Assembly (NCBI GenBank): GCA_965644315.1
Contig: CBFFRQ010000154.1
Span: 1 to 28,220, forward strand
Source of the DNA: Caecitellus pseudoparvulus
Taxonomy: Eukaryota > Protista > Bigyra: Bicosoecida
Direction of reading: 5' to 3'
DNA length: 28,220 nucleotides
Shown here: positions 323 to 27,495 of the stretch, piece after piece
How the letters are laid out: each line of letters starts with the position of its first letter
Position numbering within the stretch: the first letter of the stretch is position 1
Program-made: the position numbers and the translations under genes
Notes under the pieces: model-generated
Database searches by the model: none
What the model was told of the DNA's origin: nothing
What the model saw: only the letters and a program-made list of their open reading frames with translations

Positions 323-542
323 TTTCCAAATGTCAACCTAATCATAGGTTGTGCATTGCTAACAATGCCTAATCCAGGCGCTCGTGCACCCAAGTGTGGT
401 GTTGCACAGCGCTAGTGCATTGCATTGGGTGCGCGGGTGAGCAGCAGTGCGATTTCCGCACGCCACGCTCCCCACGCAGTGCTAAGTGCGGCTCCGGCTG
501 GACGCTGCACCACTGCTTGCCCGAAACCATTGCTTCATCATC

Positions 543-3500
543 ATGTCATCCAAGGCCAGCCAAGTCCTCGGCGTGCTCTTCGCGGACAAGTGCCTGGAGC
601 AGCGTGTGTCAGGGCGGCCACGAACAGGCGTGCTGACTGACATGTCACGCCGAGGGGCAGCCCGGACTTTCCAGCTCGGTGGCATGGACATTGACTGCAC
701 GGATGGCCAAGATGCATCATTTTTCGTCCGCAAGTGGCTTGGCATCTTCGGAGATGAGCTGGAGGCCGAGTTTCCTGGAGCTGCTCCTGTGATGGTGCGC
801 GCTAATTCCGCGCTGAAACAATCCGCACCAGGGCAGACCATTCTCCTTGTCACGCTGCCGAGTGACGGTGAAGGCCCCGCCATTGCCAAGTCCCTGCGCG
901 TTGCTGCTGCTGTGCGAGAAGACTTCATCATCATGTTGAAGGGGGGCGGCTCTGTGGGCGTGGTGTACTCCAACACGCGGCAGTTCACGTCAGAGCGCGC
1001 CAGGGTCAGCGTGATCGCCCCTCCCTCTGTAGTGAAGGTTGCTCAAAAGATCTCTGAGGCAGCAACCAACATTGCCTGTGAGAGTGGGGATGTGTCCAAG
1101 ATCTTGAAGCTTGTCCATGCCCATGTCACCAACACTCACTCCATCGCCAAGCGTGCTCCAAAGCCTGTCGGACACTCCGTCTCTCCAGAAGATGACGCCT
1201 CTGTCGACAAGCTGCCAAGCACACTGCCAAAGCCCCTTGCTGAAGGCGGTCCCAAGAAGAAGAAGACACGGAGGGGCAAACGCAAGCCATCGACAAAGAG
1301 CTCTCCTCCTCGGCGCTTTGCTGAACTGTTCAAGGAGGGCGTCGTGACTACTCGCCCCACAGCGCCCTCCCCTCCATCTGCACCCGCCGAGTCGTCAGGC
1401 CAAGCTGCTCCTTCCCCTGAACATGTCCCTCTTCCGTCCACCAGAGTCAAGCGCCCGACCTTCAGCAGATGGGACTCGCCCAGCCCACGCAAGAGACCTC
1501 CTCCCGTGTCCCCGACAGCTGCGGCACTATCGGGCAGCGGGGCACAGCCACCTCTTGCAAGTCCTGCAAACACGGCACCCACTACGCTGCTAAAACTTGC
1601 TGACTGCAGTCGCCGACCAGCACGGCTTGGACAGGCAAACCTTGACTTGGGTTCCCCCTTGCAGCAACTCCTCGCCTCTGCGCACGCGTTCCGCAATAAG
1701 GACCAACGACACTGTGTCCAGGCCTGCTTTGAAACAGCAGCAGGAGAGCCACTCTTCAATGACGATGACCTTGTCCTTCTTCAACACGCAGCCACCATCC
1801 AAGCGGCGCAGACATCCTTCTGTGCTGTGTTGAAGAAGAGCAGCGCGCGTCACCCTGGCACACCAGACTCGGAGGTCCATGCTGTCTGTGAAACAGAACC
1901 TTCCATGCCGACCACCGAGCAAGACAAGCTTGACCTCTTTCAATCGTTCCTGTACCGACATGCGCCTGATGATGCAGCACTCACCAGTGCCTGTCCACCT
2001 GTGCTCCTCCCTGGTCTTCATCTCTTGCTCACGCGTATCAACGAGGGCCATCGGGAACTTGAAGGCGGCACAGTGTCTGGACACTGCCTGGTTGATGTCA
2101 AGGCAGAGAAAGAGATGACCTCCGAGGCAAAAGTCTTTGCTGGGGTGTACTTCGCGTTTGCTCTCAGCTTGGTTGACACTGGAGGTGTCTCCCACCTTCA
2201 GCTCATTGTCGTCAACGCTGAGAAGTCCACACTTGTACTGTGGAACCCTGACGAACCCTTCAAGAGCACCAACATTCCAATCGACGGCTGCCTGAACACA
2301 CTCGACTCGATGGGCATTGAGTCTGTGTACCGTGTCTCATCCTCCCCGCTGAGTGGCAAGCCGATTCCCTTCAAAGACAGAGTGCGGCTGGCCATGCTGT
2401 CCCTCAGGTCTGACTTTCCCCCACTCCCGTTCGTAGCTGAGGACGAGACTGTCTACCCAAAGACTCTCATCACTGGCAAGACAACACGGGTGTACCTCCC
2501 TGTAGGCCGCACCACGCGCCAACAAGCAGCTGCCGATGAGAGAGCCAAGACGGTTGACCCCATACTGTCACTCATCCCAACATCTGTACAAGTCGCCGAC
2601 CAGATCAGTAGCGATGCACCCCATACCCCTGTCGGCCGCGGAAGACACATGACACTCGCACTTGCTGCTTGGAATGTGCACGGCTCCTGCGGCCAGTGTG
2701 TCCACGATGTCGTCACCTGTGTCCAGTCTGTGTGCAGTGCGTCGTCCATGTTGGCACTCTGTGTCACAGAGCCTGGGGGGCACGGCCTGCTCGACACGGA
2801 AGTCATGGGCCTTGAATGCTTCCGCCCAAGCCCGCCTGATCGGCCTGTCGGGCGGAGTGAGGTTGCCTTGCTGCTTGATCGAAGACTCAATGGCTCAGTG
2901 ATCCCGGGCCTCGACGTTGATGGTCGCTGCATAATTGCTTGCTCGATCCCTGCAAGCCCACAACCCATCGCCATCATAGCCACGTACGTACCCAACTGGC
3001 ACTCTTGGCAGCGAAAGAAGCCAGTCGCTGATCCGGACACGAAGCTTCCGTACCGGCAAGAGGTTTGGCGGCAGCTTGAGTCTGCTGTTCAACAGCTCCG
3101 CCTCACCCACATGATTGTCATCATGGGTGACTTGAACACTCATCCAGGTGACGAAGGGGTAGGCACGTGGGGAGCAGATCACTGGGAGAACCGGACCGGC
3201 ATTCCCGAGCCCACTGAAGACATCCTGCAGATGCAGCTCCTCTGCGAGCAAGGCCCACTGATCCCAGCCGGACTTGGTGGCCTGCCAACGCACAGGTATG
3301 GTCGGGCTCTGGACCACATCCTGATGACTGAGGACCTCCACAGTATGTTGAGCAGACCACTGCACATCACAACAACGTTCTCCAGCGGGACGAAAAAGAG
3401 TGCCGCTCGACTAGTCCTCAGTGACCATCATCTTGTTGCAGCAGAAGTCCGAGTGAAGCCTGCCAAGCGAGTGTGGACATCATCCAAGAGCCCCCATGTA

Positions 3501-6500
3501 CAGGCGGTGCCACCCTGGTGGACCTCAGCGACAGAGGCTGGGCTGGCAGCGCAAGCGATGTTTCGAGGATCCCTCAGCTCGCGGGCCACCGCGCTCCAGA
3601 CAGGCAGCGCCGCCCCGAGCCTATCCTTTCTCAACGGTGCTATCGAAGCTGCGGCTATGGACACACATCGCAAGGCCAAGACCCCACGTGACCCTCTGCC
3701 CCAGCTGAAGATGGACATCAAGGCGGCCAGCGGGCTCAAGAAGTCCATGACTGCACGCGTGTCCAAGCTGCGGAAGACCATTGCCAAGCTGCACCGGAAG
3801 CTCGCACTTGCCACCGGTCGGCATCCTCAGCCAGACCACGCCCGTGCCATCCGAGAGGGAATCTCCATGGCCACTGAAGAGCTACACGCCACGCTTCAAT
3901 GCCGCAAGGATGCAATGCGGAAGTGCACGAGGCTTGTGAAGAAGAAGCGACATGTCACTCTGTCCAGGATCCGAGCACGCTTGAGGGAACTCGCTGTCAC
4001 GGATCCCTTCACTGCCCACCAACACATCAAGCGCCTGTCAGGTCGAGGTCGTCGAGCCCGTCGAGCTCCCATCAGGTCCGTGAAGTCCATGCAGGGAGTG
4101 CTCATCTCCTCCCCTGATCTGGTGAAGGAGGAGGTTGCCAAGCAGATGTCTGGCATCCTGAGTCACAACAAGCCCAGGCCAACATCGCTGAAGTACGGGC
4201 TGGCAAGGTTCCTTCCCTCAGCCCAAGAGTCCTTCACCCCGCCAGTGACATGGCTTCCCTCCAAGAAGCAAGTCAAAGTCCTCATGGGATCACTCAGCTT
4301 GCATCGACACCCAGGCTCTGGCAAGTTCCAATCAGAGCACATCAAGTATGCTGGGCCAGGCTTCCAAGACATCTACTCCCAAGCCGTCATCCAAGCGTTG
4401 CAACACGGCACCTGCCCGCCAGACTACCATGCAGGCATTGGGTCACTCATCCCCAAGAAGACGAGTGAAGCTGGGCGGCCTCGCACATACCGCTTGATTG
4501 TATGCCGCCCCCCTCCTGCGAAGCTCTTCTTCTCAGTGGCCGCTGCATGCCTGGAGTCCTGGATGCAAACATGGGTGTCGAAGGAGCAGGCTGGCTTCAC
4601 TCGACACCGCAACACGCATGAGCACATCTTGGCTCTCCAAGAGGTGATCAAGGGCCACCTGCGACAGTCAACAGCGCCAGTGCAAGTCCTGGTACTCTTC
4701 GTGGACTTCCGGGGAGCATTCGACTCTGTGAGCCACGCAGCCATCACAGAGATCCTTGAGGCTGCCTCCCTCCCTGCGCCACTCCTGGCCGTCATCAAGG
4801 AGTACATGTCCAAGGCGACGGTCTCCATCAACACGCGCCATGGTCTTTGTCGCCCCCTTCCTGTCAGCAATGGTGTCCCCCAAGGAGGAGCTCTGTCCCC
4901 CCTCCTCTTCAAGGTTGCGATAGATGTGCTGTCGCAAAGGCTCCACGAGATGCCCCTCCAAGGCATCCAGGGAGTGGGCATCCCAACACCAGCAGGCCAT
5001 GTCACCCACACCCTGTATGCAGACGACCTGGCCTGCATCGCAACGTCTGCCACGGCCTTGCACCGAATCTTCGTAGAGGTGAAGGCCATCGCTGCCCGGG
5101 TTGGCCTTGCCATCAACCCGTCGAAGTCCGGGGTCATGATCCTTGCCAACTCCGTGCGAGGCAGCCGGACACCAGTCAGTGAAAGGAAGAAGTTGGTGTG
5201 GCGCTCGGCTGCCCTCAAAGCGGGCAGCATGCTGAAGGTTGGCACCAAGTCCATCCAACGGGTGGCCGAGTACACCTACTTGGGTGTGCCGATGTCCGAA
5301 CATCCTGCCAAGACCCGTGCACTTACCCTGCAACAAGCTGGGCTTGCTTGCATCCAAGCCGGGTTCACTGCGGGCGCGCTGCTCAGTGCCACCTGGCTCG
5401 ATGTGCAGCAGCGGCACCTGGTTGGGTATGCCACTGTCACGTCAGCCGCCGACTACATGCTGTCCACCCAAGCCAACAGTTCCCTGCTTCCGCTGCGCGA
5501 TGTTGACCGCGGCGTCGCCCTCGCCTTGGACAGGACCCAAGTCGGCTCGCAGAGTGCACTCATGCGCCCCCACAGCTACGCCAAGCTGGCTCTATGCGGA
5601 GTCCTGCCTGCCCACATCCGCTCCACGCAACTGCGGACTGGGATGTTTGTCAAGGCTCTCCGGATGCTGCACTCGGACACCCCTCTTGCCCGAGCTCTGT
5701 GCCTGACCATCCCGCAGGCCCTTGACCTTATGCCTGCTTCGATGTCGACGACCTTCATCGTCGACACCATTGCTGATGGAGGTCGACTCCGGGCTGCCAG
5801 TGTCCCTGCTCCGTGGGCACTGCATGCCCTCTTGGACCTCTGGCTCATGGGCTGCATGCCAGACCTTGCACAGCTTCGGCTTGCATGTGCACCTGGCTCT
5901 GAGCATGCTGCCACAGCCCTTGCCCAAGTCCTTGCCGGACTTAAGACCACCCCGGGCCTCCACAGGTCTGCGGTGGTTGGGGTGGCTGCCAGCGAGACGT
6001 CGTCCATGGCCGAACCCCCGGCCTTCACGGCAGACACCCCCTGGGCCCTGCGTCGCCAAGTCCTCGCGTCGTATCTTCATGTAGCCCAGGCAGTGCCGAG
6101 TGCAGCTGCCCACTACACCACCGACAGCCGAATCCCCCAAGTGCAGAAGCCCAGGCCGTATCATCTTGGGCCTGGTGCGCAGCACTTCGTGTGGCTACAT
6201 CCACTGCCACACGGGGTGAACCCCCTCTTCTGGGTCTGTCCTGATGACAGGCCCACCAGAGTGATGGTCCATCACTTCCAGACCTTACAGCTTCTTCATG
6301 GGGGGGACAGTGCCACTCTGTACGAGTGCTGTCCGATTTGCGGACTCAACACCGATGTACAGCTGCACGTGCACATCCTGCTGCACTGCACCCACCACGA
6401 ACTCACCATGGCACGCCAACACACGATGACCAAGTTCAGAGAACTGGCCAACAGGTCAGCTGTGCCCGAGTCCGCGGCGGGCCAAGTGCAGTGCCTGCCC

Positions 6501-7109
6501 ATCCCCCCCAAGATCTGCCACGCCCTCCTTCGTGCCCCCGACCCAGAGCCGCGAAGCCTGCGGGACCTCGAGGTCCTCCACAGGCTCCTGCTCTGCGGGC
6601 AGTGGCCTCACCGGTGGGGGCTGGCCGACGAAGAGCAGCTTGTCTCTATGAAAGAGGCGGCTGTCCTCTCCCACCCCCACCTCGTCCACCGTGCTGGTCC
6701 TTGCCGTGTCCGTGCCCCAGCTGTATGGCAAGACATCCTGCGCAGCGCGGTTGAGTTCACAGCAAAGGCGTGGCGGGTCACAGTCACTTACATGTTGCGT
6801 ATGACCGATGCCCACCACCTTGCTGTCCAGAGGCATGCTGAGTACCTGTGGTGGGCAGTACATGGGCGCGGGGCGCCGCTGCCTGGCCGCACGCAGCCAG
6901 TGCGGTCAGCGGCCACGCGGCACACGCGCAGGCCCCGCACTCGCCGCAGGGCACGCACCTTTTTCCCTGCCAAGGCTGGCCAAGTGCCGTCCACGGAGGG
7001 CAAGGTCCAGAGGACGCTGCAGCACTTCATGGGGCCTCAGCCAGCCCATGCAGACACTGATGGTGAGGGGGAAGGGCCCGATGGTTCCTGTGAAGAGAGC
7101 GAGGAGTAA
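543..7109 (+). CDS. Retrotransposon polyprotein (~2188 aa): N-terminal module, APE endonuclease, reverse transcriptase, CCHC zinc finger
   Basis: The ORF track starts at GTG 486; the first ATG (543, MSSKASQVLGVLF) aligns with the partner's MNAQVDQVLGVLF. APE motifs: WNVHG (2670), VTE, YVP, GDLN, LDHI, SDH (3420). RT motifs: IPKK, YRLI, QAGF, DFRGAFDSV, GVPQGGALSPLLF, YADD (5016-5027), INPSKS, YLG. CPIC-x10-H-x4-C at 6330-6389. Confidence 0.95.
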   Translation: MSSKASQVLGVLFADKCLEQRVSGRPRTGVLTDMSRRGAARTFQLGGMDIDCTDGQDASFFVRKWLGIFGDELEAEFPGAAPVMVRANSALKQSAPGQTILLVTLPSDGEGPAIAKSLRVAAAVREDFIIMLKGGGSVGVVYSNTRQFTSERARVSVIAPPSVVKVAQKISEAATNIACESGDVSKILKLVHAHVTNTHSIAKRAPKPVGHSVSPEDDASVDKLPSTLPKPLAEGGPKKKKTRRGKRKPSTKSSPPRRFAELFKEGVVTTRPTAPSPPSAPAESSGQAAPSPEHVPLPSTRVKRPTFSRWDSPSPRKRPPPVSPTAAALSGSGAQPPLASPANTAPTTLLKLADCSRRPARLGQANLDLGSPLQQLLASAHAFRNKDQRHCVQACFETAAGEPLFNDDDLVLLQHAATIQAAQTSFCAVLKKSSARHPGTPDSEVHAVCETEPSMPTTEQDKLDLFQSFLYRHAPDDAALTSACPPVLLPGLHLLLTRINEGHRELEGGTVSGHCLVDVKAEKEMTSEAKVFAGVYFAFALSLVDTGGVSHLQLIVVNAEKSTLVLWNPDEPFKSTNIPIDGCLNTLDSMGIESVYRVSSSPLSGKPIPFKDRVRLAMLSLRSDFPPLPFVAEDETVYPKTLITGKTTRVYLPVGRTTRQQAAADERAKTVDPILSLIPTSVQVADQISSDAPHTPVGRGRHMTLALAAWNVHGSCGQCVHDVVTCVQSVCSASSMLALCVTEPGGHGLLDTEVMGLECFRPSPPDRPVGRSEVALLLDRRLNGSVIPGLDVDGRCIIACSIPASPQPIAIIATYVPNWHSWQRKKPVADPDTKLPYRQEVWRQLESAVQQLRLTHMIVIMGDLNTHPGDEGVGTWGADHWENRTGIPEPTEDILQMQLLCEQGPLIPAGLGGLPTHRYGRALDHILMTEDLHSMLSRPLHITTTFSSGTKKSAARLVLSDHHLVAAEVRVKPAKRVWTSSKSPHVQAVPPWWTSATEAGLAAQAMFRGSLSSRATALQTGSAAPSLSFLNGAIEAAAMDTHRKAKTPRDPLPQLKMDIKAASGLKKSMTARVSKLRKTIAKLHRKLALATGRHPQPDHARAIREGISMATEELHATLQCRKDAMRKCTRLVKKKRHVTLSRIRARLRELAVTDPFTAHQHIKRLSGRGRRARRAPIRSVKSMQGVLISSPDLVKEEVAKQMSGILSHNKPRPTSLKYGLARFLPSAQESFTPPVTWLPSKKQVKVLMGSLSLHRHPGSGKFQSEHIKYAGPGFQDIYSQAVIQALQHGTCPPDYHAGIGSLIPKKTSEAGRPRTYRLIVCRPPPAKLFFSVAAACLESWMQTWVSKEQAGFTRHRNTHEHILALQEVIKGHLRQSTAPVQVLVLFVDFRGAFDSVSHAAITEILEAASLPAPLLAVIKEYMSKATVSINTRHGLCRPLPVSNGVPQGGALSPLLFKVAIDVLSQRLHEMPLQGIQGVGIPTPAGHVTHTLYADDLACIATSATALHRIFVEVKAIAARVGLAINPSKSGVMILANSVRGSRTPVSERKKLVWRSAALKAGSMLKVGTKSIQRVAEYTYLGVPMSEHPAKTRALTLQQAGLACIQAGFTAGALLSATWLDVQQRHLVGYATVTSAADYMLSTQANSSLLPLRDVDRGVALALDRTQVGSQSALMRPHSYAKLALCGVLPAHIRSTQLRTGMFVKALRMLHSDTPLARALCLTIPQALDLMPASMSTTFIVDTIADGGRLRAASVPAPWALHALLDLWLMGCMPDLAQLRLACAPGSEHAATALAQVLAGLKTTPGLHRSAVVGVAASETSSMAEPPAFTADTPWALRRQVLASYLHVAQAVPSAAAHYTTDSRIPQVQKPRPYHLGPGAQHFVWLHPLPHGVNPLFWVCPDDRPTRVMVHHFQTLQLLHGGDSATLYECCPICGLNTDVQLHVHILLHCTHHELTMARQHTMTKFRELANRSAVPESAAGQVQCLPIPPKICHALLRAPDPEPRSLRDLEVLHRLLLCGQWPHRWGLADEEQLVSMKEAAVLSHPHLVHRAGPCRVRAPAVWQDILRSAVEFTAKAWRVTVTYMLRMTDAHHLAVQRHAEYLWWAVHGRGAPLPGRTQPVRSAATRHTRRPRTRRRARTFFPAKAGQVPSTEGKVQRTLQHFMGPQPAHADTDGEGEGPDGSCEESEE

Positions 7110-7930
7110 GGCGGAACGCAGGCGTGCGGGCGGGGAGTGGAACAGCCACGCTTGTGGCCGCGTCTACCCTCCACGAGTGTCCTGACGTGATGAACCTGTG
7201 TGAAGCGTGGTGATAACCACGGTAGCCCGAAGCAGATGCCCAAGACCTTACCTTTTACTTACTACATAGCCTGCGAGTAGCAGTGGAGTGAGCGGGAGCG
7301 TGCCTCGGGCCGCGGCGCGTGTGCAGCCGCAGTGCTGCACGGCCGCGGCCCGGATGGCGGCTGACGATGAAGCAAGCTCACTCACCACGAAACCAGGGCG
7401 TGACGGGTTGAAGAAGAAGGTCCTTTTCCTTTCTGTATCCCCCTTGATGCGCGCGATGCGCTCTGTGGCGCGGGCGCGTGTGTGCGCACGGGTGCTGGTG
7501 TGCGCGATCGAATTCCGCACCACGCACCCGGCCGAGTTCCCGCGCAGAGGCGGAGCACACACCTCATGAAGGGCGCAGAGAGGCCTATGAGGGCCACAGA
7601 GGAGGTGGGTGAGGAATTTGGATTATGATCTGTTGTCAAGACTGCGCGGATGCCTGGGTGTGCTCTGGTGTGCCCCAGGTGTCTGGCGCTGGCGGAGCAA
7701 GGGATGAAGTGTAGCGGAGGAGGGCCAAGATGATGAATTGGAGCGGGCAGGGACCTGCCCTAGCAAGTGGCGGCAGATATAACGGGTGCAAGCCTGTGTT
7801 TGTTGCGAATCCGCGCCAAGCGGTAGCCGCTGTGGCGTCCTACATGTGCAGAGGTGCATTGTGGGGCGCCCGTGTGACGCTCAAGCTGTACGGTGCCAAG
7901 CTGTGCCGAGGTGAAATGCATTGTGAGTTG
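7110..7930 (+). other. ~820-nt structured 3' UTR of the autonomous element, no poly(A)
   Basis: Non-coding, repeated at 17244-18064; GC-rich hairpins at 7306-7352 and ~7461-7549; runs directly into CTAACC repeats. Confidence 0.8.
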
Positions 7931-8001
7931 CTAACCCTAACCCTAACCCTAACCCTAACCCTAACCCTAACCCTAACCCTAACCCTAACCCTAACCCTAA
8001 C
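7931..8001 (+). repeat. Interstitial telomeric spacer, ~12 CTAACC units
   Basis: Perfect repeats between the 3' end of copy 1 and the 5' end of the partner. Confidence 0.97.
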
Positions 8002-8224
8002 TTTCCAAATGTCAAGCTAATCACAAGTTGTGAAGTGCTAACATTGCCTAATCCAGGCGCTCGTGCACCCAAGTGTGGTGTTGCACAGTGCTTGCTGGTT
8101 GGGTGGTGCGCACCGGGGCGGGGTAGTGCGAATTCCGCACACCATCGCACCGTGGCTCCCAGTTTGCGCCCTCGGTCGGGGCATGCACCTGGGATCGACA
8201 TCAAAAGCATCATTGACAAGCATC

Positions 8225-10309
8225 ATGAACGCCCAAGTGGATCAAGTCCTGGGGGTCCTCTTCGTGGAGGGGTGCCTGAAGCGCAAGCAAGTGCTCGGCC
8301 CCAGAACAGGTGTCTTCACTGACATGCCACGTCGGGGTGCCGCACGCACCTTCGAGCTTGGAGGACCCCTGCCCAAGACTGATCATGATAGTTCATCTTC
8401 GGCACGGGACATGTGGCTCGAGGTCTATGGGGAAGCCGCCGAACGGCTGATCCCAGGGCTGAGTGCGGAATTCGGCAACGCCAATGCGGCCCTGCGCCAG
8501 GGACCCACCGGATCGCCAACCATCCTCGTCACGCTCGGAAGTGAGGGTGATTCACCAACAGTGGCACGTCAACTTCGCATTCTTGCTGCTCAAGAGGACG
8601 ACTTCGCCATTCGAGTCGGCCAAGGTGGGTTCGTCGCCGTGGCCTACACCAACACCAAGCAGTTCGCATCGGCGAAGGCGAAAGTGAAGGTGAAGGCCCA
8701 CCCCACCGCCATCCAAGTGGCCCACCAAGTGACCAAGGAAGCAACCGAAATCGCCTGCCAGTCAGGTGATGTTGCCAAGGTCATGTGCCTCGTTAGGTCC
8801 CACTTCGACCATGGCCCCGTGCCAGCCCAAGCCGTCCGTCCCAGTGTCAGACAATCCGTCCCCTCCGAGGGTGATGCACCTGTCGACACCAAGACACCAT
8901 CGACCTGGACTGACACTCAGCTCGACAAGGCACCGAAGAAGAAGAAGACCCGTCGAGGCAAGCGAGGAAAGGGCAAGTCAGCCGGACGATCCCTCACCTT
9001 CGAGGACGTCTTCATCAAGAACGTCCGGCCACCTGCACCTCGACCAACCTCACCACCTGCCACCCAAGGCTCACCCAAAGATACCGTCACCACCCCTGTG
9101 GTGCATGCCATGTTGCCTTCATCAAGGGTGCAGCGGGGCGTCGACCGCAAGTGGCCGTCCCCCACCCCGTCGGGCGAGGCAAGCCCCGAGGTGCACCGGT
9201 ATCGGCCGTCTGCAGCAGCAGCATGGGAGGTGATCACAAGGGTGGTGCCTCTTCATGACAGTGTGCGGACACCCGAGCACCTGGCCGAGTACCCCATCAA
9301 GCCTGGCCCTCTGGCCGACCTGCTGTCATCGACCCACGTGTACTCTAACGTGGGGGGGCGGGCCTGTGTCCAGGCCTGTCTCGAGACGGCAGCAGGGGAG
9401 AGGGTCTTCGAGGCTGGGGACCTCCTCCTACTCCAGCATGCAGCCACCATCAACGCTGCCCAGCTTGCCTTCAAGCACATGGTCAGGCAGCTGGAGGGGG
9501 TGGTCAGTGACTCGTCCAGCTCGGACATCATGGACGTCGGCCAGAAGCCACCCTCCCCCTTCCGCTCAGACGGGCAACGGGTGGCCGTCTTCCGCAACAT
9601 GCTGCACCAGCACTCGCCGGATGACACCTTCCTGGCCCCAGGTACACCACCAGTCCTGCTTCCCGGCCTGCACCTGCTCATCGACCGCATCAACCAAGGG
9701 TACCGTGCCCCAGCCGGGCATGATGACCTTGGCCAGGCCGGCGTCGACCCCAGCCAGGTTGATGAAGAGGGTGACCAAGAGGGGCACCTCGACGGAGTGC
9801 TGTATGCCTTCGCACTTCGAGAGGTGTGGACCGACAACACGGCCCATCTGCAGCTCATCCTCGTCGACCATGATCGAGGCAAGCTGGTGCTGTGGAACCC
9901 CGACATCCCTGACCTCCATGACGAGCTGCCCCTGCACAAGTGCATGACCCGGCTGGCAGCCGAAGGCATCAACGTCTTGTACCGGATCTGGACCACACCC
10001 GAGGCGGGCAGTCCAGCACCCTTCCGGGACAGGCTTCGAGGGGCACTCCAGTCTCTCCGAGATGACTTCCCCCCCCTGCCTCACAAGGCCACCGACGGCA
10101 CCGTGCACCCCCAGACCCTCATCGCTGGCAAGGGCACAAGGGTGGCCATGCCTCATGGGCGGATGACCCGACAGCAGGCCGCCACCCTGGAGGCTGAGGT
10201 CAAGGACCCCCTCAAGCGGCTGGTGCCTGAAGACGGCGAGGGTCGCCTGCCCAAGGTCAAGGATGTGCCCCACATCTCGATCGGGCAGATGGGTGGACGC
10301 CTGATGTAA
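8225..10309 (+). CDS. ~694-aa stand-alone homologue of the polyprotein N-terminal module (ORF1/Gag-analogue with putative cysteine-protease domain)
   Basis: Collinear shared blocks: QVLGVLF, PRTGV, RRGAARTF, PKKKKTRRGKR, CVQAC(F/L)ETAAGE, LLQHAATI, PPVLLPGLHLL, HLQLI, LVLWNPD, DFPPLP, TRQQAA. 29/47 identity over the first 47 aa. An alternative in-frame ATG lies at 8183. Confidence 0.9.
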   Translation: MNAQVDQVLGVLFVEGCLKRKQVLGPRTGVFTDMPRRGAARTFELGGPLPKTDHDSSSSARDMWLEVYGEAAERLIPGLSAEFGNANAALRQGPTGSPTILVTLGSEGDSPTVARQLRILAAQEDDFAIRVGQGGFVAVAYTNTKQFASAKAKVKVKAHPTAIQVAHQVTKEATEIACQSGDVAKVMCLVRSHFDHGPVPAQAVRPSVRQSVPSEGDAPVDTKTPSTWTDTQLDKAPKKKKTRRGKRGKGKSAGRSLTFEDVFIKNVRPPAPRPTSPPATQGSPKDTVTTPVVHAMLPSSRVQRGVDRKWPSPTPSGEASPEVHRYRPSAAAAWEVITRVVPLHDSVRTPEHLAEYPIKPGPLADLLSSTHVYSNVGGRACVQACLETAAGERVFEAGDLLLLQHAATINAAQLAFKHMVRQLEGVVSDSSSSDIMDVGQKPPSPFRSDGQRVAVFRNMLHQHSPDDTFLAPGTPPVLLPGLHLLIDRINQGYRAPAGHDDLGQAGVDPSQVDEEGDQEGHLDGVLYAFALREVWTDNTAHLQLILVDHDRGKLVLWNPDIPDLHDELPLHKCMTRLAAEGINVLYRIWTTPEAGSPAPFRDRLRGALQSLRDDFPPLPHKATDGTVHPQTLIAGKGTRVAMPHGRMTRQQAATLEAEVKDPLKRLVPEDGEGRLPKVKDVPHISIGQMGGRLM

Positions 10310-10640
10310 GTCACCTGTGGGGGCATACTCCCTGTGCCACACATGACTGAAGCTTTGTGTCGCGACCGACGCACATAGCTGACATCGGACATTGGAAAGT
10401 CCAACCCAACCTCACCATCACCAACCCAACATCGATACCAACACATCAGGACTCGGCTCAGTGGAAGGGGAAGGCACTTGCAGCAAGATCTGTGAGGCCG
10501 CCCCCAAACCTGAGCCGAAGGGACAGCCGGGCTGGGTCGTGTGCTTGCATCTCAGCAACACCCAGTCCGTGTCGAGTCCATATCCTCCAGCCCACACCGC
10601 CACCCAAGCCAAGCAAGTCGGGTCTCCACCCCTGGACATC

Positions 10641-10702
10641 GGACCGAGACGGACGAGACTGGACTGGACGGACAAGACAAGAGTGGACCGAGACCTGGAC
10701 CT
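10641..10702 (+). repeat. Imperfect GGAC/AGAC microrepeat in the partner 3' UTR
   Basis: ggaccgagac ggacgagact ggactggacg gacaagacaa gagtggaccg agacctggac. Confidence 0.6.
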
Positions 10703-10924
10703 ACACCTCAAGACCATCCCACCGGGGCGGGCGCTGAAGCGCCAAGACAGACGGCGACTTATACAACGGACACGAGTCTGTGCTAGTCGCAAAGCCGTGC
10801 AAGCGGTGCCGTCGTGGTGTCTGTGTCACTGCATTCTGTTGTGGCGCAGGTGGCACCACATGTCCAAGCCCAAGCTGTACCATGATGTAGCCTGCATGGA
10901 GGCAATCTGCAATGCATTGAGTAG

Positions 10925-10934
10925 CTAACCTAAA
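10925..10934 (+). repeat. Minimal variant telomeric linker CTAACCTAAA
   Basis: Lies between the partner 3' end and the first base of copy 2 that matches copy 1. Confidence 0.75.
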
Positions 10935-13900
10935 CGCTAATTCCGCGCTGAAACAATCCGCACCAGGGCAGACCATTCTCCTTGTCACGCTGCCGAGTGA
11001 CGGTGAAGGCCCCGCCATTGCCAAGTCCCTGCGCGTTGCTGCTGCTGTGCGAGAAGACTTCATCATCATGTTGAAGGGGGGCGGCTCTGTGGGCGTGGTG
11101 TACTCCAACACGCGGCAGTTCACGTCAGAGCGCGCCAGGGTCAGCGTGATCGCCCCTCCCTCTGTAGTGAAGGTTGCTCAAAAGATCTCTGAGGCAGCAA
11201 CCAACATTGCCTGTGAGAGTGGGGATGTGTCCAAGATCTTGAAGCTTGTCCATGCCCATGTCACCAACACTCACTCCATCGCCAAGCGTGCTCCAAAGCC
11301 TGTCGGACACTCCGTCTCTCCAGAAGATGACGCCTCTGTCGACAAGCTGCCAAGCACACTGCCAAAGCCCCTTGCTGAAGGCGGTCCCAAGAAGAAGAAG
11401 ACACGGAGGGGCAAACGCAAGCCATCGACAAAGAGCTCTCCTCCTCGGCGCTTTGCTGAACTGTTCAAGGAGGGCGTCGTGACTACTCGCCCCACAGCGC
11501 CCTCCCCTCCATCTGCACCCGCCGAGTCGTCAGGCCAAGCTGCTCCTTCCCCTGAACATGTCCCTCTTCCGTCCACCAGAGTCAAGCGCCCGACCTTCAG
11601 CAGATGGGACTCGCCCAGCCCACGCAAGAGACCTCCTCCCGTGTCCCCGACAGCTGCGGCACTATCGGGCAGCGGGGCACAGCCACCTCTTGCAAGTCCT
11701 GCAAACACGGCACCCACTACGCTGCTAAAACTTGCTGACTGCAGTCGCCGACCAGCACGGCTTGGACAGGCAAACCTTGACTTGGGTTCCCCCTTGCAGC
11801 AACTCCTCGCCTCTGCGCACGCGTTCCGCAATAAGGACCAACGACACTGTGTCCAGGCCTGCTTTGAAACAGCAGCAGGAGAGCCACTCTTCAATGACGA
11901 TGACCTTGTCCTTCTTCAACACGCAGCCACCATCCAAGCGGCGCAGACATCCTTCTGTGCTGTGTTGAAGAAGAGCAGCGCGCGTCACCCTGGCACACCA
12001 GACTCGGAGGTCCATGCTGTCTGTGAAACAGAACCTTCCATGCCGACCACCGAGCAAGACAAGCTTGACCTCTTTCAATCGTTCCTGTACCGACATGCGC
12101 CTGATGATGCAGCACTCACCAGTGCCTGTCCACCTGTGCTCCTCCCTGGTCTTCATCTCTTGCTCACGCGTATCAACGAGGGCCATCGGGAACTTAAAGG
12201 CGGCACAGTGTCTGGACACTGCCTGGTTGATGTCAAGGCAGAGAAAGAGATGACCTCCGAGGCAAAAGTCTTTGCTGGGGTGTACTTCGCGTTTGCTCTC
12301 AGCTTGGTTGACACTGGAGGTGTCTCCCACCTTCAGCTCATTGTCGTCAACGCTGAGAAGTCCACACTTGTACTGTGGAACCCTGACGAACCCTTCAAGA
12401 GCACCAACATTCCAATCGACGGCTGCCTGAACACACTCGACTCGATGGGCATTGAGTCTGTGTACCGTGTCTCATCCTCCCCGCTGAGTGGCAAGCCGAT
12501 TCCCTTCAAAGACAGAGTGCGGCTGGCCATGCTGTCCCTCAGGTCTGACTTTCCCCCACTCCCGTTCGTAGCTGAGGACGAGACTGTCTACCCAAAGACT
12601 CTCATCACTGGCAAGACAACACGGGTGTACCTCCCTGTAGGCCGCACCACGCGCCAACAAGCAGCTGCCGATGAGAGAGCCAAGACGGTTGACCCCATAC
12701 TGTCACTCATCCCAACATCTGTACAAGTCGCCGACCAGATCAGTAGCGATGCACCCCATACCCCTGTCGGCCGCGGAAGACACATGACACTCGCACTTGC
12801 TGCTTGGAATGTGCACGGCTCCTGCGGCCAGTGTGTCCACGATGTCGTCACCTGTGTCCAGTCTGTGTGCAGTGCGTCGTCCATGTTGGCACTCTGTGTC
12901 ACAGAGCCTGGGGGGCACGGCCTGCTCGACACGGAAGTCATGGGCCTTGAATGCTTCCGCCCAAGCCCGCCTGATCGGCCTGTCGGGCGGAGTGAGGTTG
13001 CCTTGCTGCTTGATCGAAGACTCAATGGCTCAGTGATCCCGGGCCTCGACGTTGATGGTCGCTGCATAATTGCTTGCTCGATCCCTGCAAGCCCACAACC
13101 CATCGCCATCATAGCCACGTACGTACCCAACTGGCACTCTTGGCAGCGAAAGAAGCCAGTCGCTGATCCGGACACGAAGCTTCCGTACCGGCAAGAGGTT
13201 TGGCGGCAGCTTGAGTCTGCTGTTCAACAGCTCCGCCTCACCCACATGATTGTCATCATGGGTGACTTGAACACTCATCCAGGTGACGAAGGGGTAGGCA
13301 CGTGGGGAGCAGATCACTGGGAGAACCGGACCGGCATTCCCGAGCCCACTGAAGACATCCTGCAGATGCAGCTCCTCTGCGAGCAAGGCCCACTGATCCC
13401 AGCCGGACTTGGTGGCCTGCCAACGCACAGGTATGGTCGGGCTCTGGACCACATCCTGATGACTGAGGACCTCCACAGTATGTTGAGCAGACCACTGCAC
13501 ATCACAACAACGTTCTCCAGCGGGACGAAAAAGAGTGCCGCTCGACTAGTCCTCAGTGACCATCATCTTGTTGCAGCAGAAGTCCGAGTGAAGCCTGCCA
13601 AGCGAGTGTGGACATCATCCAAGAGCCCCCATGTACAGGCGGTGCCACCCTGGTGGACCTCAGCGACAGAGGCTGGGCTGGCAGCGCAAGCGATGTTTCG
13701 AGGATCCCTCAGCTCGCGGGCCACCGCGCTCCAGACAGGCAGCGCCGCCCCGAGCCTATCCTTTCTCAACGGTGCTATCGAAGCTGCGGCTATGGACACA
13801 CATCGCAAGGCCAAGACCCCACGTGACCCTCTGCCCCAGCTGAAGATGGACATCAAGGCGGCCAGCGGGCTCAAGAAGTCCATGACTGCACGCGTGTCCA

Positions 13901-16900
13901 AGCTGCGGAAGACCATTGCCAAGCTGCACCGGAAGCTCGCACTTGCCACCGGTCGGCATCCTCAGCCAGACCACGCCCGTGCCATCCGAGAGGGAATCTC
14001 CATGGCCACTGAAGAGCTACACGCCACGCTTCAATGCCGCAAGGATGCAATGCGGAAGTGCACGAGGCTTGTGAAGAAGAAGCGACATGTCACTCTGTCC
14101 AGGATCCGAGCACGCTTGAGGGAACTCGCTGTCACGGATCCCTTCACTGCCCACCAACACATCAAGCGCCTGTCAGGTCGAGGTCGTCGAGCCCGTCGAG
14201 CTCCCATCAGGTCCGTGAAGTCCATGCAGGAAGTGCTCATCTCCTCCCCTGATCTGGTGAAGGAGGAGGTTGCCAAGCAGATGTCTGGCATCCTGAGTCA
14301 CAACAAGCCCAGGCCAACATCGCTGAAGTACGGGCTGGCAAGGTTCCTTCCCTCAGCCCAAGAGTCCTTCACCCCGCCAGTGACATGGCTTCCCTCCAAG
14401 AAGCAAGTCAAAGTCCTCATGGCATCACTCAGTCTACACCGTCACCCAGGCTCTGGCAAGTTCCAGTCAGAGCACATCAAGTATGCTGGGCCAGGCTTCC
14501 AAGACATCTACTCCCAAGCCGTCATCCAAGCGTTGCAACAAGGCACCTGCCCGCCAGACTACCATGCAGGCATTGGGTCACTCATCCCCAAGAAGACGAG
14601 TGAAGCTGGGCGGCCTCGCACATACCGCTTGATTGTATGCCGCCCCCCTCCTGCGAAGCTCTTCTTCTCAGTGGCCGCTGCATGCCTGGAGTCCTGGATG
14701 CAAACATGGGTGTCGAAGGAGCAGGCTGGCTTCACTCGACACCGCAACACGCATGAGCACATCTTGGCTCTCCAAGAGGTGATCAAGGGCCACCTGCGAC
14801 AGTCAACAGCGCCAGTGCAAGTCCTGGTACTCTTCGTGGACTTCCGGGGAGCATTCGACTCTGTGAGCCACGCAGCCATCACAGAGATCCTTGAGGCTGC
14901 CTCCCTCCCTGCGCCACTCCTGGCCGTCATCAAGGAGTACATGTCCAAGGCGACGGTCTCCATCAACACGCGCCATGGTCTTTGTCGCCCCCTTCCTGTC
15001 AGCAATGGTGTCCCCCAAGGAGGAGCTCTGTCCCCCCTCCTCTTCAAGGTTGCGATAGATGTGCTGTCGCAAAGGCTCCACGAGATGCCCCTCCAAGGCA
15101 TCCAGGGGGTTGGCATCCCAACACCAGCAGGCCATGTCACCCACACCCTGTATGCAGACGACCTGGCCTGCATCGCAACGTCTGCCACGGCCTTGCACCG
15201 AATCTTCGTAGAGGTGAAGGCCATCGCTGCCCGGGTTGGCCTTGCCATCAACCCGTCGAAGTCCGGGGTCATGATCCTTGCCAACTCCGTGCGAGGCAGC
15301 CGGACACCAGTCAGTGAAAGGAAGAAGTTGGTGTGGCGCTCGGCTGCCCTCAAAGCGGGCAGCATGCTGAAGGTTGGCACCAAGTCCATCCAACGGGTGG
15401 CCGAGTACACCTACTTGGGTGTGCCGATGTCCGAACATCCTGCCAAGACCCGTGCACTTACCCTGCAACAAGCTGGGCTTGCTTGCATCCAAGCCGGGTT
15501 CACTGCGGGCGCGCTGCTCAGTGCCACCTGGCTCGATGTGCAGCAGCGGCACCTGGTTGGGTATGCCACTGTCACGTCAGCCGCCGACTACATGCTGTCC
15601 ACCCAAGCCAACAGTTCCCTGCTTCCGCTGCGCGATGTTGACCGCGGCGTCGCCCTCGCCTTGGACAGGACCCAAGTCGGCTCGCAGAGTGCACTCATGC
15701 GCCCCCACAGCTACGCCAAGCTGGCTCTATGCGGAGTCCTGCCTGCCCACATCCGCTCCACGCAACTGCGGACTGGGATGTTTGTCAAGGCTCTCCGGAT
15801 GCTGCACTCGGACACCCCTCTTGCCCGAGCTCTGTGCCTGACCATCCCGCAGGCCCTTGACCTTATGCCTGCTTCGATGTCGACGACCTTCATCGTCGAC
15901 ACCATCGCTGATGGGGGTCGGCTTCGAGCTGCCAGTGTCCCTGCTCCGTGGGCACTGCATGCCCTCTTGGACCTCTGGCTCATGGGCTGCATGCCAGACC
16001 TTGCACAGCTTCGGCTTGCATGTGCACCTGGCTCTGAGCATGCTGCCACAGCCCTTGCCCAAGTCCTTGCCGGACTTAAGACCACCCCGGGCCTCCACAG
16101 GTCTGCGGTGGTTGGGGTGGCTGCCAGCGAGACGTCGTCCATGGCCGAACCCCCGGCCTTCACGGCAGACACCCCCTGGGCCCTGCGTCGCCAAGTCCTC
16201 GCGTCGTATCTTCATGTAGCCCAGGCAGTGCCGAGTGCAGCTGCCCACTACACCACCGACAGCCGAATCCCCCAAGTGCAGAAGCCCAGGCCGTATCATC
16301 TTGGGCCTGGTGCGCAGCACTTCGTGTGGCTACATCCACTGCCACACGGGGTGAACCCCCTCTTCTGGGTCTGTCCTGATGACAGGCCCACCAGAGTGAT
16401 GGTCCATCACTTCCAGACCTTACAGCTTCTTCATGGGGGGGACAGTGCCACTCTGTACGAGTGCTGTCCGATTTGCGGACTCAACACCGATGTACAGCTG
16501 CACGTGCACATCCTGCTGCACTGCACCCACCACGAACTCACCATGGCACGCCAACACACGATGACCAAGTTCAGAGAACTGGCCAACAGGTCAGCTGTGC
16601 CCGAGTCCGCGGCGGGCCAAGTGCAGTGCCTGCCCATCCCCCCAAGATCTGCCACGCCCTCCTTCGTGCCCCCGACCCAGAGCCGCGAAGCCTGCGGGAC
16701 CTCGAGGTCCTCCACAGGCTCCTGCTCTGCGGGCAGTGGCCTCACCGGTGGGGGCTGGCCGACGAAGAGCAGCTTGTCTCTATGAAAGAGGCGGCTGTCC
16801 TCTCCCACCCCCACCTCGTCCACCGTGCTGGTCCTTGCCGTGTCCGTGCCCCAGCTGTATGGCAAGACATCCTGCGCAGCGCGGTTGAGTTCACAGCAAA

Positions 16901-18064
16901 GGCGTGGCGGGTCACAGTCACTTACATGTTGCGTATGACCGATGCCCACCACCTTGCTGTCCAGAGGCATGCTGAGTACCTGTGGTGGGCAGTACATGGG
17001 CGCGGGGCGCCGCTGCCTGGCCGCACGCAGCCAGTGCGGTCAGCGGCCACGCGGCACACGCGCAGGCCCCGCACTCGCCGCAGGGCACGCACCTTTTTCC
17101 CTGCCAAGGCTGGCCAAGTGCCGTCCACGGAGGGCAAGGTCCAGAGGACGCTGCAGCACTTCATGGGGCCTCAGCCAGCCCATGCAGACACTGATGGTGA
17201 GGGGGAAGGGCCCGATGGTTCCTGTGAAGAGAGCGAGGAGTAAGGCGGAACGCAGGCGTGCGGGCGGGGAGTGGAACAGCCACGCTTATGGCCGCGTCTA
17301 CCCTCCACGAGTGTCCTGACGTGATGAACCTGTGTGAAGCGTGGTGATAACCACGGTAGCCCGAAGCAGATGCCCAAGACCTTACCTTTTACTTACTACA
17401 TAGCCTGCGAGTAGCAGTGGAGTGAGCGGGAGCGTGCCTCGGGCCGCGGCGCGTGTGCAGCCGCAGTGCTGCACGGCCGCGGCCCGGATGGCGGCTGACG
17501 ATGAAGCAAGCTCACTCACCACGAAACCAGGGCGTGACGGGTTGAAGAAGAAGGTCCTTTTCCTTTCTGTATCCCCCTTGATGCGCGCGATGCGCTCTGT
17601 GGCGCGGGCGCGTGTGTGCGCACGGGTGCTGGTGTGCGCGATCGAATTCCGCACCACGCACCCGGCCGAGTTCCCGCGCAGAGGCGGAGCACACACCTCA
17701 TGAAGGGCGCAGAGAGGCCTATGAGGGCCACAGAGGAGGTGGGTGAGGAATTTGGATTATGATCTGTTGTCAAGACTGCGCGGATGCCTGGGTGTGCTCT
17801 GGTGTGCCCCAGGTGTCTGGCGCTGGCGGAGCAAGGGATGAAGTGTAGCGGAGGAGGGCCAAGATGATGAATTGGAGCGGGCAGGGACCTGCCCTAGCAA
17901 GTGGCGGCAGATATAACGGGTGCAAGCCTGTGTTTGTTGCGAATCCGCGCCAAGCGGTAGCCGCTGTGGCGTCCTACATGTGCAGAGGTGCATTGTGGGG
18001 CGCCCGTGTGACGCTCAAGCTGTACGGTGCCAAGCTGTGCCGAGGTGAAATGCATTGTGAGTTG
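10935..18064 (+). mobile_element. 5'-truncated autonomous element, copy 2
   Basis: Near-identical to 800-7930 (offset 10135, then 10134 after a 1-bp deletion); lacks the 5' UTR and first ~86 codons. Confidence 0.96.
10936..17243 (+). pseudogene. Truncated and frameshifted polyprotein ORF of copy 2
   Basis: Native start is missing. The C7 run of copy 1 (6503-6509) is C6 at 16638-16643, giving a premature stop at 16785; the remaining C-terminus continues in another frame to 17243. The indel may be a homopolymer sequencing error. Confidence 0.8.
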
Positions 18065-18078: not shown

Positions 18079-18278
18079 TTTATAGTAATTAGAAGGGATT
18101 ATTTATAACTTTATCATATGGATTTAATAATATTACGCTATCGCATAATATCATTAACTGTTTTGATTATATATCTAAAAATATAAATTCTGATATAAAT
18201 AAATATATATTAATATATTGTATGCGGGGTATGTATTCATAGAGTCTATAGCTGATTAGTAGATATATATATATTTAT
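18079..18278. other. Sharply AT-rich ~200-bp island at the array/subtelomere boundary
   Basis: Almost all A/T with (TA)n runs, in contrast to GC-rich DNA on both sides; no ORF. Confidence 0.85.
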
Positions 18279-18673
18279 GTCTGCTTCTGAGTCCGTGTTA
18301 GCCGCAAGTTGCGATAGCAATCTGAGGCACGGCAGCTCATACATTTATGTATGCGGTCCCCCCAGTGTCGTAACGCGCGGCGGGGCCGTTTTGGGTCGCG
18401 GGGTGGCGCGGTGTGCGCGGGGTCGCCGCGGCGCCCCCAACACGCCAAGGCCGAAACCCGCGCCCAACTCGCCCAACAGGCGCCGAACGCCTGAATGACG
18501 ACGAAGAACATTAAAGTACCATGTTCCTGATGGAACATGCTCATTTCACACGGTGACTCACCATGTTTCGTGCAAGATATGTGCGCGACGCAAGCGAGAA
18601 CCGTGGCCCGCTTCTTTCGAGGAGCAAGTGTGAGGTGAGTGTGGTGAAAACAAGAGGCTACAATGCAATATTC

Positions 18674-25010: not shown

Positions 25011-25457
25011 TCAAGGTGAAGGAGCCCCCGGTGTGCTAGGTCGGGGCCCAGGCCGGCTGAGGTACGTCTCCTGCTTGCACGTTGCAACTACGCAGCCTCT
25101 CAGCCAAGGGGAAGCCCACCACTGCTCGATAACCCTAGCGGCATGCTTGGTGGCAGACAAGTGTCCGCATTTGTCACAAAAGGCGCAATGATCCACACCC
25201 TTTGCGAGATGGCAAGCTGGTGTGCCGCAGAAGGTACCCAGATGCCTGTGTCCAAAGGACAGCCTGAGACCACCCTCACTCCTCGAACCATCCTTCGCGT
25301 GCACATCAACTTCCTGGCCACCAACTATGCTTATCAGCTCCATCGCATTATCAAGGTGGCCATGGCCGCAGGCCAGTCGTAACAAAGCCTCAGGCGCGCG
25401 GCGACGGACTGCCAAAGTAAGTGCTGCACGGTTCGATTTCCGCAGAACAGGCACCAA
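25011..25457 (-). pseudogene. Degenerate ankyrin-like repeat gene fragment
   Basis: PEALLRLACGHGHLDNAMELISIVGGQEVDVHA...EGGLRLSFGHRHLG matches the neighbouring repeat family but is decayed, with no clear ATG. Confidence 0.55.
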
Positions 25458-25904
25458 CGACTCAACGCCCCCCGGCGGTCTACCGGAGCGAGAAATGCAT
25501 CTTTGCGGACCCTAGAAGAAACTATCCCGTCGCAGGTTTCATCTCTAGCGACCTGCTTGGCGTATTTCTGCTTCCCTTACCGCAATCTAGATGCGATTAT
25601 TTGGCTGGCGCAGGCTCAGCAGTAAAATCAAAAACTGCGAAAGCTTGCTAACAGACAAGACTGCCCACAGATGCAAAACGACATGCATACCACCGAGAAA
25701 TTTAAAATACAATCGGCATTGATATTTGCTCTTGTGGGCTCAACTGATGAAGTAGTTTGAGTTTGAAGCGCCACCTTGCCTTCCTCTCCTGGCCATTCCT
25801 CTTGTCGCAAATACCTAAGTATCCACTCTCAGTGCTCGGCTCAACGGCACCTCTACACTGTAGTCAAAGCTCATATCAACCTTCCACCTTAGCCCGACAA
25901 CGCG

Positions 25905-27119: not shown

Positions 27120-27495
27120 GGCGTGGTGAGGCAAGTTCCGCAGTCGCACGAGACGCAGACTTTGCAGGAAATTATTCGCACGGGCCACAATTCAAGGTTT
27201 GCGTAGCATCTATCTGTCTATTACAGGTGGTTTGATTTTGATTGCCCCTGCATAGGTTTTGTGGTGCTCGCAGCGCCTTCGAATACGCTGTATCTGACAC
27301 CCGCTTCTGCTCTCCTCAAAACCTGACCCCAACACAGACCAATATTCACAAAACAACCCCCTGACAAGACAAATTTCTTGATCATGCTTAGCTGGTGCGA
27401 TCCAGGTCCACTTTTGAACAAAGGAGCGTCTCGCTGCGCGTGCTCACGCTCGCCAGCTCCAAGTGCGGAACTTTTCCCTGCTTGAACTGTGAAGC

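Follow-up and report, generated by a model that had tools for sequence, protein, structure and literature searches.

Several described retrotransposons resemble the element reported here. HeT-A of Drosophila lacks a reverse transcriptase (RT), encodes a protein, is restricted to telomeres, is the most abundant member of its system (with TART and TAHRE), and forms head-to-tail arrays with 3' ends toward the centromere (PMC4700185, PMC2173066). We analyzed the left chromosome end on contig CBFFRQ010000154.1 of Caecitellus pseudoparvulus (GenBank assembly GCA_965644315.1; positions 1-28,220, hereafter the window, 28,220 nt in length) and found at 8002-10924 (+) an element that is like HeT-A in all of these respects. 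This 2923-nt element, here called the partner, is a full-length non-autonomous long interspersed element (LINE); its single protein corresponds to everything upstream of the endonuclease (EN) in the autonomous LINEs of the same telomeres. It differs from HeT-A in three ways: the host has TERT and TTAGGG caps, and the elements are separated by telomere repeats; the donor is a polyprotein element with a single open reading frame (ORF), not a two-ORF Jockey element; and instead of a Jockey-derived Gag-like ORF (no gag or knuckle hit in Pfam) the partner encodes a predicted papain-fold domain.

HAL1 and Ag-Sponge likewise join the 5' and 3' parts of a LINE, keep one ORF1-equivalent protein and have a long independent history (PMC5786205). 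They stem from L1 and CR1 elements with a separate ORF1. The partner appears instead to have been excised from a polyprotein; it has a protease-like domain, is specific to telomeres, and its end lies in telomere phase with no poly(A). HAL1 and Ag-Sponge are dispersed in genomes. TRE5-A.2 of Dictyostelium also invites comparison, being a site-specific element that kept ORF1, lost ORF2 and is mobilized in trans via a structured 3' module (PMC3159450). It derives from one helper, TRE5-A.1, and targets tRNA genes, whereas the protein of the partner shares about 41% identity with each candidate helper, and its target is the telomere.

MoTeR1 and MoTeR2 of Magnaporthe oryzae are, as here, autonomous and non-autonomous elements standing head to tail in TTAGGG telomeres with the 5' end distal, and their spacers range from half a repeat to more than 20 (10.1101/845669). 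MoTeR1 carries a restriction-like endonuclease (RLE), whereas the helpers here carry an APE endonuclease; MoTeR2 shares its ends with MoTeR1 around an unrelated middle without obvious function, whereas the middle of the partner is a selected homologue of the helper N-terminus. TRAS and SART of Bombyx compare with the helpers, which are also APE LINEs on telomere repeats in a telomerase-bearing host, and the orientation here is that of TRAS. In contrast to TRAS and SART, which have two ORFs and poly(A) tails, the helpers have a single ORF and their ends join CTAA directly. We know of no protein-coding RT-less partner of TRAS or SART.

A cysteine protease N-terminal to EN and RT within a long single ORF, as predicted here, is also a feature of the autonomous elements Dualen (Josephin-related), NeSL and Utopia-1_TSP (both Ulp1-like), for which an anti-degradation role has only been suggested (PMC8557442, PMC9977147, PMC4640811). 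Those elements bear an RLE, whereas here no RLE motif was conserved after the CCHC in a five-sequence alignment, RNase H was not detected by Pfam, and the protease domain also exists in an element without RT; the helpers thus lack the set of APE, RLE and RNase H that characterizes Dualen.

The partner has a LINE 5' part and a LINE 3' part and lacks EN/RT; it fits the class of ORF1-present bipartite non-autonomous LINEs, yet belongs to none of the families named above. It departs from this class in its origin from a single-ORF polyprotein and in the retained protease-like domain; in open-access text we found no RT-less LINE that retains a protease domain. Here the HeT-A arrangement arose independently, in a stramenopile-like protist, and because this protist keeps telomerase, RT-less protein-coding telomeric elements need no telomerase loss. 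It is also a natural dissection of a single-ORF LINE, with the polyprotein cut at the endonuclease border and the front piece kept through synonymous saturation, and it makes testable both the role of LINE cysteine-protease domains (Dualen, NeSL, Utopia) and whether ORF1-only elements are parasites or helpers.

Anatomy of the partner element

The limits of the partner are exact: the telomere phase stops at 8001 and restarts at 10925. A 5' untranslated region (UTR; 8002-8224, +), a candidate promoter or RNA signal, precedes an ORF of 694 amino acids (aa; 8225-10309, +). Tip-ward, across an interstitial telomere spacer of about 12 repeats (7931-8001, +), lies a full-length autonomous element of family F1 (323-7930, +; 7.6 kb), whose 5' end faces the chromosome tip. 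Its single 2188-aa ORF (543-7109, +) comprises an RRM-like domain, a linker, a papain-fold domain (aa ~345-680), APE (from aa ~702), RT (aa 1303-1582) and a C-terminal CCHC; only APE and RT are recognized by Pfam. In BLASTP the partner protein aligned to F1 residues 1-699 with 41% identity and 57% similarity over 700 columns (E 9e-157). The partner stop codon aligns with autonomous residue ~706, four codons upstream of a WNV motif that opens the APE domain in 12/12 autonomous sequences. A first-pass annotation made from the DNA letters had described a 694-codon frame that is uninterrupted and ends exactly where the endonuclease begins; we find the frame open throughout and its stop at the first endonuclease strand. 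A Pfam search of the protein and comparison of the 3' UTR (10310-10722) revealed no EN/RT or remnant of it in the partner. In neutral simulations the frame stayed open in 18/2000 runs at 0.08 substitutions per site and in 0/2000 at 0.3 or 0.6. Since neutral evolution rarely keeps such a frame, while synonymous sites between the partner and the autonomous families are saturated (pS 0.70-0.77), the open frame is not due to chance.

Apart from its own fragment, the partner protein had no outside sequence relative in Pfam or in searches of 5.8 billion and 1.84 billion proteins. Its AlphaFold model consists of two folded parts and a disordered linker. The first part is an alpha/beta domain (aa 37-195; 8333-8809, +), within which aa 37-142 weakly match the RRM of human L1 ORF1p (2w7a, 2ldy; Z 5.0, 91 residues aligned, rmsd 3.8-3.9); a sequence match to L1 ORF1p was not found, and an Atlas feature search with aa 1-200 returned nothing. 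The model thus weakly suggests an L1-ORF1p-like RRM and a probable RNA-binding domain. The linker (aa 196-335; 8810-9229, +) is rich in Pro, Ser and Thr, in keeping with the Pro/Ser linker noted in the first-pass annotation, and contains a conserved basic patch, KKKKTRRGKR, a possible nuclear-localization or RNA-binding motif.

The second folded part (aa 336-670; 9230-10234, +; model pLDDT 84) points to a papain-like fold of clan CA type. Nearly all of the top 50 VIA matches were papain-like, and the best Z, 7.5, was common to the ComA C39 peptidase and two Josephins, including PcJOS (rmsd 3.8-4.5, 129-168 residues aligned). Josephins tied with C39 and staphopain in VIA and ranked first in Foldseek (E 0.013-0.06), Atlas shape and feature searches also pointed weakly to the papain-like fold, and the domain had no Pfam hit. 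Candidate catalytic residues are Cys381 (codon 9365-9367), His541 (9845-9847) and Asn558 (9896-9898; all +). In the model, Cys381 starts helix 381-390, His541 starts strand 541-548 and Asn558 follows strand 553-557, so that His541 and Asn558 lie on neighbouring strands 17 residues apart; Asn375 could serve as the oxyanion residue. The Cys/His/Asn set is invariant in 13/13 sequences, and a distant family, G, keeps Cys/His/Asp at the same places with a profile score above 200/200 shuffles. Because several structural searches agree and the candidate catalytic residues are invariant, and with no single score strong, we assign the C-terminal half with moderate confidence to a papain-fold domain with an intact Cys-His-Asn set, that is, a predicted protease. 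The partner protein is ORF1p-like by position, as everything upstream of EN, although its donor has no separate ORF1 and half of the folded protein appears papain-like.

Both ends of the partner are shared with autonomous elements. The first ~95 nt of the 5' UTR are nearly invariant across families and 0.45% diverged between partner variants; neither an Rfam match nor a ribozyme match at the 5' end was found. The last ~200 nt (10723-10924, +), a conserved structured module and candidate RT-recognition signal, align across all F families sampled, with 63-72% identity to the partner overall (71-72% for F8/F11, 67% for F9/F5, 64% for F1). In their common structure, 22/50 pairs are changed on both sides and 96% are paired; the covariation was reached by 0/500 shuffles and slid controls gave 25-50%, controls that lean in favour of a structure derived from the same alignment. 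The first-pass claim of a 3' UTR unrelated except at the tip holds for the partner-specific section 10310-10722 (+), which has no clear counterpart, and needs amending for the final ~200 nt, which are shared at 64-72% identity. At least six autonomous lineages have both modules. Since the 3' module is shared by all sampled families and is closest in F8/F11, the helper need not be F1; judged by these alignments, the partner is not specifically paired with the neighbouring F1.

Every partner 3' end that we read continues with CTAA, one fixed phase of the telomere repeat. Spacers are often irregular, with a median of about 16 nt and 5 of about 42 over 300 nt, and 5'-truncated copies with variable truncation points are present. 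These marks are consistent with target-primed reverse transcription on the G-rich strand. Lack of its own EN/RT, precise 3' junctions and 5'-truncated copies also agree with the earlier suggestion that the partner borrows EN/RT in trans. At loci L001 (4201-4227), L008 and L014, short pieces of the partner 3' end are duplicated with telomere-phase bases between them, as might result from aborted and re-primed reverse transcription.

Age, selection and copy number

For age and selection we compared the partner with selected members of the autonomous families from this one genome assembly. Its identity to the N-terminal parts of the sampled families is 38-45% in every case, in the range of the families among themselves (36-48% between lineages). 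It forms its own branch, as long as other deep branches and with a similar root-to-tip length, and falls outside the F1/F2/F12-13 group (support 96/95). A sister relationship to the F1 of the window was rejected (p-AU 0.0014); as branches are long, the exact position is tentative.

Because partner copies within the assembly are identical, dN/dS was measured against marine metagenome variants. Four metagenome contigs carry a complete RT-less element between telomere repeats, with an ORF 2.8-2.9% diverged from the partner and with the same stop and RT-less 3' UTR. The ORFs differ by 40 synonymous and 19-20 non-synonymous changes, a dN/dS of 0.16 (P about 1e-11); the contigs are population consensus sequences, a caveat that does not produce a synonymous excess. 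By region, dN/dS was 0.24 for aa 1-195, 0.37 for the linker and 0.07 for aa 346-685, in the papain-fold domain. Furthermore, two of the variants differ from each other by 8 synonymous and 0 non-synonymous changes, and three indels separate the partner from the variants in the 3' UTR but 0 in the ORF. Close pairs of autonomous elements gave dN/dS 0.17-0.20 over the same region. Thus, purifying selection on the partner ORF is as strong as in the autonomous families. On the deep tree a neutral partner branch was rejected (2 x delta lnL 49), and the test of its omega against background showed no difference (2 x delta lnL about 1); synonymous saturation makes the deep maximum-likelihood omega values themselves uninterpretable, and only the likelihood tests were used. 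A further ORF at 10392-10928 was rejected as a gene, since a 7-nt insertion breaks its frame in the metagenome variants.

We searched the assembly (215 contigs, 30.6 Mb) and scored each of its 117 candidate places for the protease domain; copy counts were taken from the resulting tables. We counted about 57 partner copies. Autonomous copies number ~47, about 44 from the closer families taken together and 3 from the distant G family. The partner is thus the commonest element and outnumbers all autonomous relatives combined. Among the 28 full-length copies identity is 100% (99.97% for one), and about 15 of these copies lie directly under a telomere tract of at least 880 nt. Partner matches are clustered near contig ends, and the copies inspected sit in TTAGGG arrays. 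A second RT-less lineage was not seen in the protease-domain census.

About 24 partner copies (about 40%) are frameshifted, having G6 in place of the G7 run at 9352-9358 (+). Because every inspected frameshift, in the partner, F1 and F3, is the loss of one base in a C or G run, and because four independent metagenome contigs retain the partner frame across the ORF, we regard the G6 frameshifts as probable homopolymer errors of long reads. Single-base losses in C/G runs recur across families (in the window at 9352-9358, 4503-4508 and 6503-6509, and in other copies); they are probably assembly errors, and many "broken" copies in this genome may be intact.

The first-pass annotation had seen in the partner an old lineage under purifying selection, a view it would have given up for a dN/dS near 1 or for a nearly identical autonomous subfamily elsewhere. 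The dN/dS it proposed among partner copies was uninformative, as these copies are identical, and the metagenome comparison gave 0.16; together with 38-45% identity to all families and an own deep branch, this value bears out the old, selected lineage. No near-identical autonomous subfamily was found among the 117 scored places.

Explanations for the retained ORF

We favour, at a probability of roughly 60%, the reading that the partner is an ancient, currently amplifying ORF1-type non-autonomous LINE whose protein mainly serves its own RNA and which captures EN/RT in trans. A telomere-specific single-ORF LINE, with N-terminal domains, APE, RT and CCHC, would long ago have lost EN and RT entirely, with a stop now standing at the first endonuclease strand, while its N-terminal 694 residues and its 5' and ~200-nt 3' modules remained; the resulting anatomy is evident from homology, and the deletion event itself is what we infer from it. 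Translation of the partner RNA would yield a free protein that combines an RRM-like domain and a papain-fold protease with a basic linker between them; this protein would bind its own RNA and co-assemble with the homologous N-terminal part of the autonomous polyprotein. The borrowed RT would recognize the 3' module and extend the G-rich telomere strand by copying the partner RNA, always in the same phase; the primer would be a GTTAG 3' end that is either made by the helper endonuclease or exposed at a shortened chromosome end, and telomerase would then cap the new end. The predicted protease might free the N-terminal part from EN-RT in the polyprotein, in which case the partner would be equivalent to the processed product, or it might strip ubiquitin-type marks from the particle. 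Selection on the ORF would come mainly from benefit to the element's own copies, and a cis benefit combined with trans mobilization has precedent (PMC5786205, PMC3159450). Several points weigh against this reading. The structural scores are moderate for the papain fold (best Z 7.5, Foldseek E 0.013) and weak for the RRM (Z 5.0); no conserved cleavage site was shown at the protease/EN boundary; a co-fold of the protease domain with host ubiquitin answered neither for nor against; and recombination between chromosome ends offers identical copies another way to spread, as in MoTeR arrays (10.1101/845669). Moreover, if the ~40% of frameshifted copies were real, many would have multiplied although they make no protein themselves, a point in favour of action in trans.

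Such action in trans is the core of a division of labour like that proposed for HeT-A and TART, in which the free protein would be required by the autonomous elements, contributing extra RNA-packaging subunits, telomere targeting or polyprotein processing and perhaps serving the host chromosome ends. We regard it as possible but on the unlikely side. It would account for the abundance of the partner and its place directly under long telomere tracts in about half of its full-length copies, and it would answer a need of single-ORF helpers, which make one N-terminal unit per RT unless processed, a 1:1 ratio that limits packaging subunits; the partner and the families have also persisted together for long enough to saturate synonymous sites, and one wild sample, ERZ23495255, contains both the partner and family F7. 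The main argument against it is that selection preserves these domains just as strongly in the autonomous families, which show no sign of relying on the partner. In addition, the host has TERT and long canonical caps, and an ORF acting purely in trans should decay in copies that cheat. Benefit to its own RNA explains selection on the ORF equally well as help to others. A more specific variant, which we hold only tentatively as an unlikely one, takes the partner for a "pre-cut" N-terminal polyprotein product, an active protease joined to an RNA-binding module, acting in trans to process or escort the polyproteins that several divergent telomeric LINE families encode; if true, this would be a two-component, protease-controlled retrotransposon system beside telomerase. 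It is quite improbable that recombination, break-induced replication or gene conversion between chromosome ends accounts for most of the copies while host-level selection keeps the ORF as a domesticated telomeric gene: the identity of 28 copies along 2.9 kb, the recurrence of one 4-nt spacer in several head-to-tail dimers and the D-loop amplification documented in MoTeR arrays (10.1101/845669) would fit, but downstream neighbours, spacer lengths and truncation points vary from copy to copy, re-primed 3' fragments indicate reverse transcription, and the 3' RNA module keeps compensatory pairs. Least probable by far is a recent deletion derivative of an autonomous subfamily missed by the assembly, with a selection signal inherited from its parent. 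Telomeric arrays are often incomplete in assemblies and a single genome was available, but none of the 117 scored places is near the partner in an EN/RT frame, and for lack of such an element the idea of a one-off deletion fails. Likewise, the four metagenome contigs, 2.8-2.9% diverged, share the stop and the RT-less 3' UTR, dN/dS is 0.16 between forms that all lack RT, and a 413-nt section of the 3' UTR resembles no EN/RT sequence. A recent origin, which the first-pass annotation had also argued against, is already largely refuted.

Autonomous relatives and neighbouring sequences

The helper RT matches R2Bm (E 8e-17) and L1 ORF2p (E 4e-12), both distantly. The autonomous families are single-ORF in several assembly copies and in metagenome contig L077, and their ends join CTAA directly. 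L077 (ENA ERZ23495255) holds a complete F7-type element with a 2159-aa single ORF and telomere repeats on both sides, and comes from the same seawater sample as partner contig L061. F5 and F7 (L034, L040, L041) are 99% identical N-terminally and 87% in EN-RT, a pattern likely due to recombination between autonomous subfamilies near the protease/EN border. The G family (L075/L076, G000:C147:50800-62892; also C42 and C171) has an open frame at least 3394 aa long, in which about 18 tandem repeats of 46 aa precede a divergent papain-fold domain, APE and RT; its RT is 38-40% identical to that of F1, and its 3' end joins CTAAC. A further 3' end, with an ATGCATT...CTAAC ending, lies outside the characterized families (L020:4078-4312 and L076:656-890). 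As to the host, the RNA-binding domain of TERT was found in a 1389-aa frame (E 7e-21), and TTAGGG caps are present. Among named sequences, its Hsp90 is closest to those of oomycetes and diatoms (74-75%), hence our term stramenopile-like. A close ubiquitin domain lies in a 2814-aa frame at G000:C8:22903-23118 (-), about 12 kb inside a telomeric array.

All elements of the window read on the C-rich strand, with 3' ends facing the centromere. The window begins with the terminal telomere tract (TAACCC)54 (1-322, +; 54 repeats). Centromere-ward of the partner, a short irregular telomere-like spacer of 10 nt (10925-10934, +) is followed by a 5'-truncated F1 copy (10935-18064, +), 99.7% identical to 800-7945 and missing one C in a C run near 16640. 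The innermost piece of the array is a remnant of a G-family 3' UTR (18361-18680, +; 94%), separated from the truncated F1 copy by an AT-rich stretch (18079-18300). Host genes begin centromere-ward of this remnant, which abuts the stop codon of a Sel1-repeat gene: an intron-less 1876-aa ORF with about 31 Sel1-like 36-aa repeats lies directly inside the array (18674-24304, -). It is followed by ankyrin-like repeat ORFs at 25011-28197, making this a zone of subtelomeric repeat proteins.

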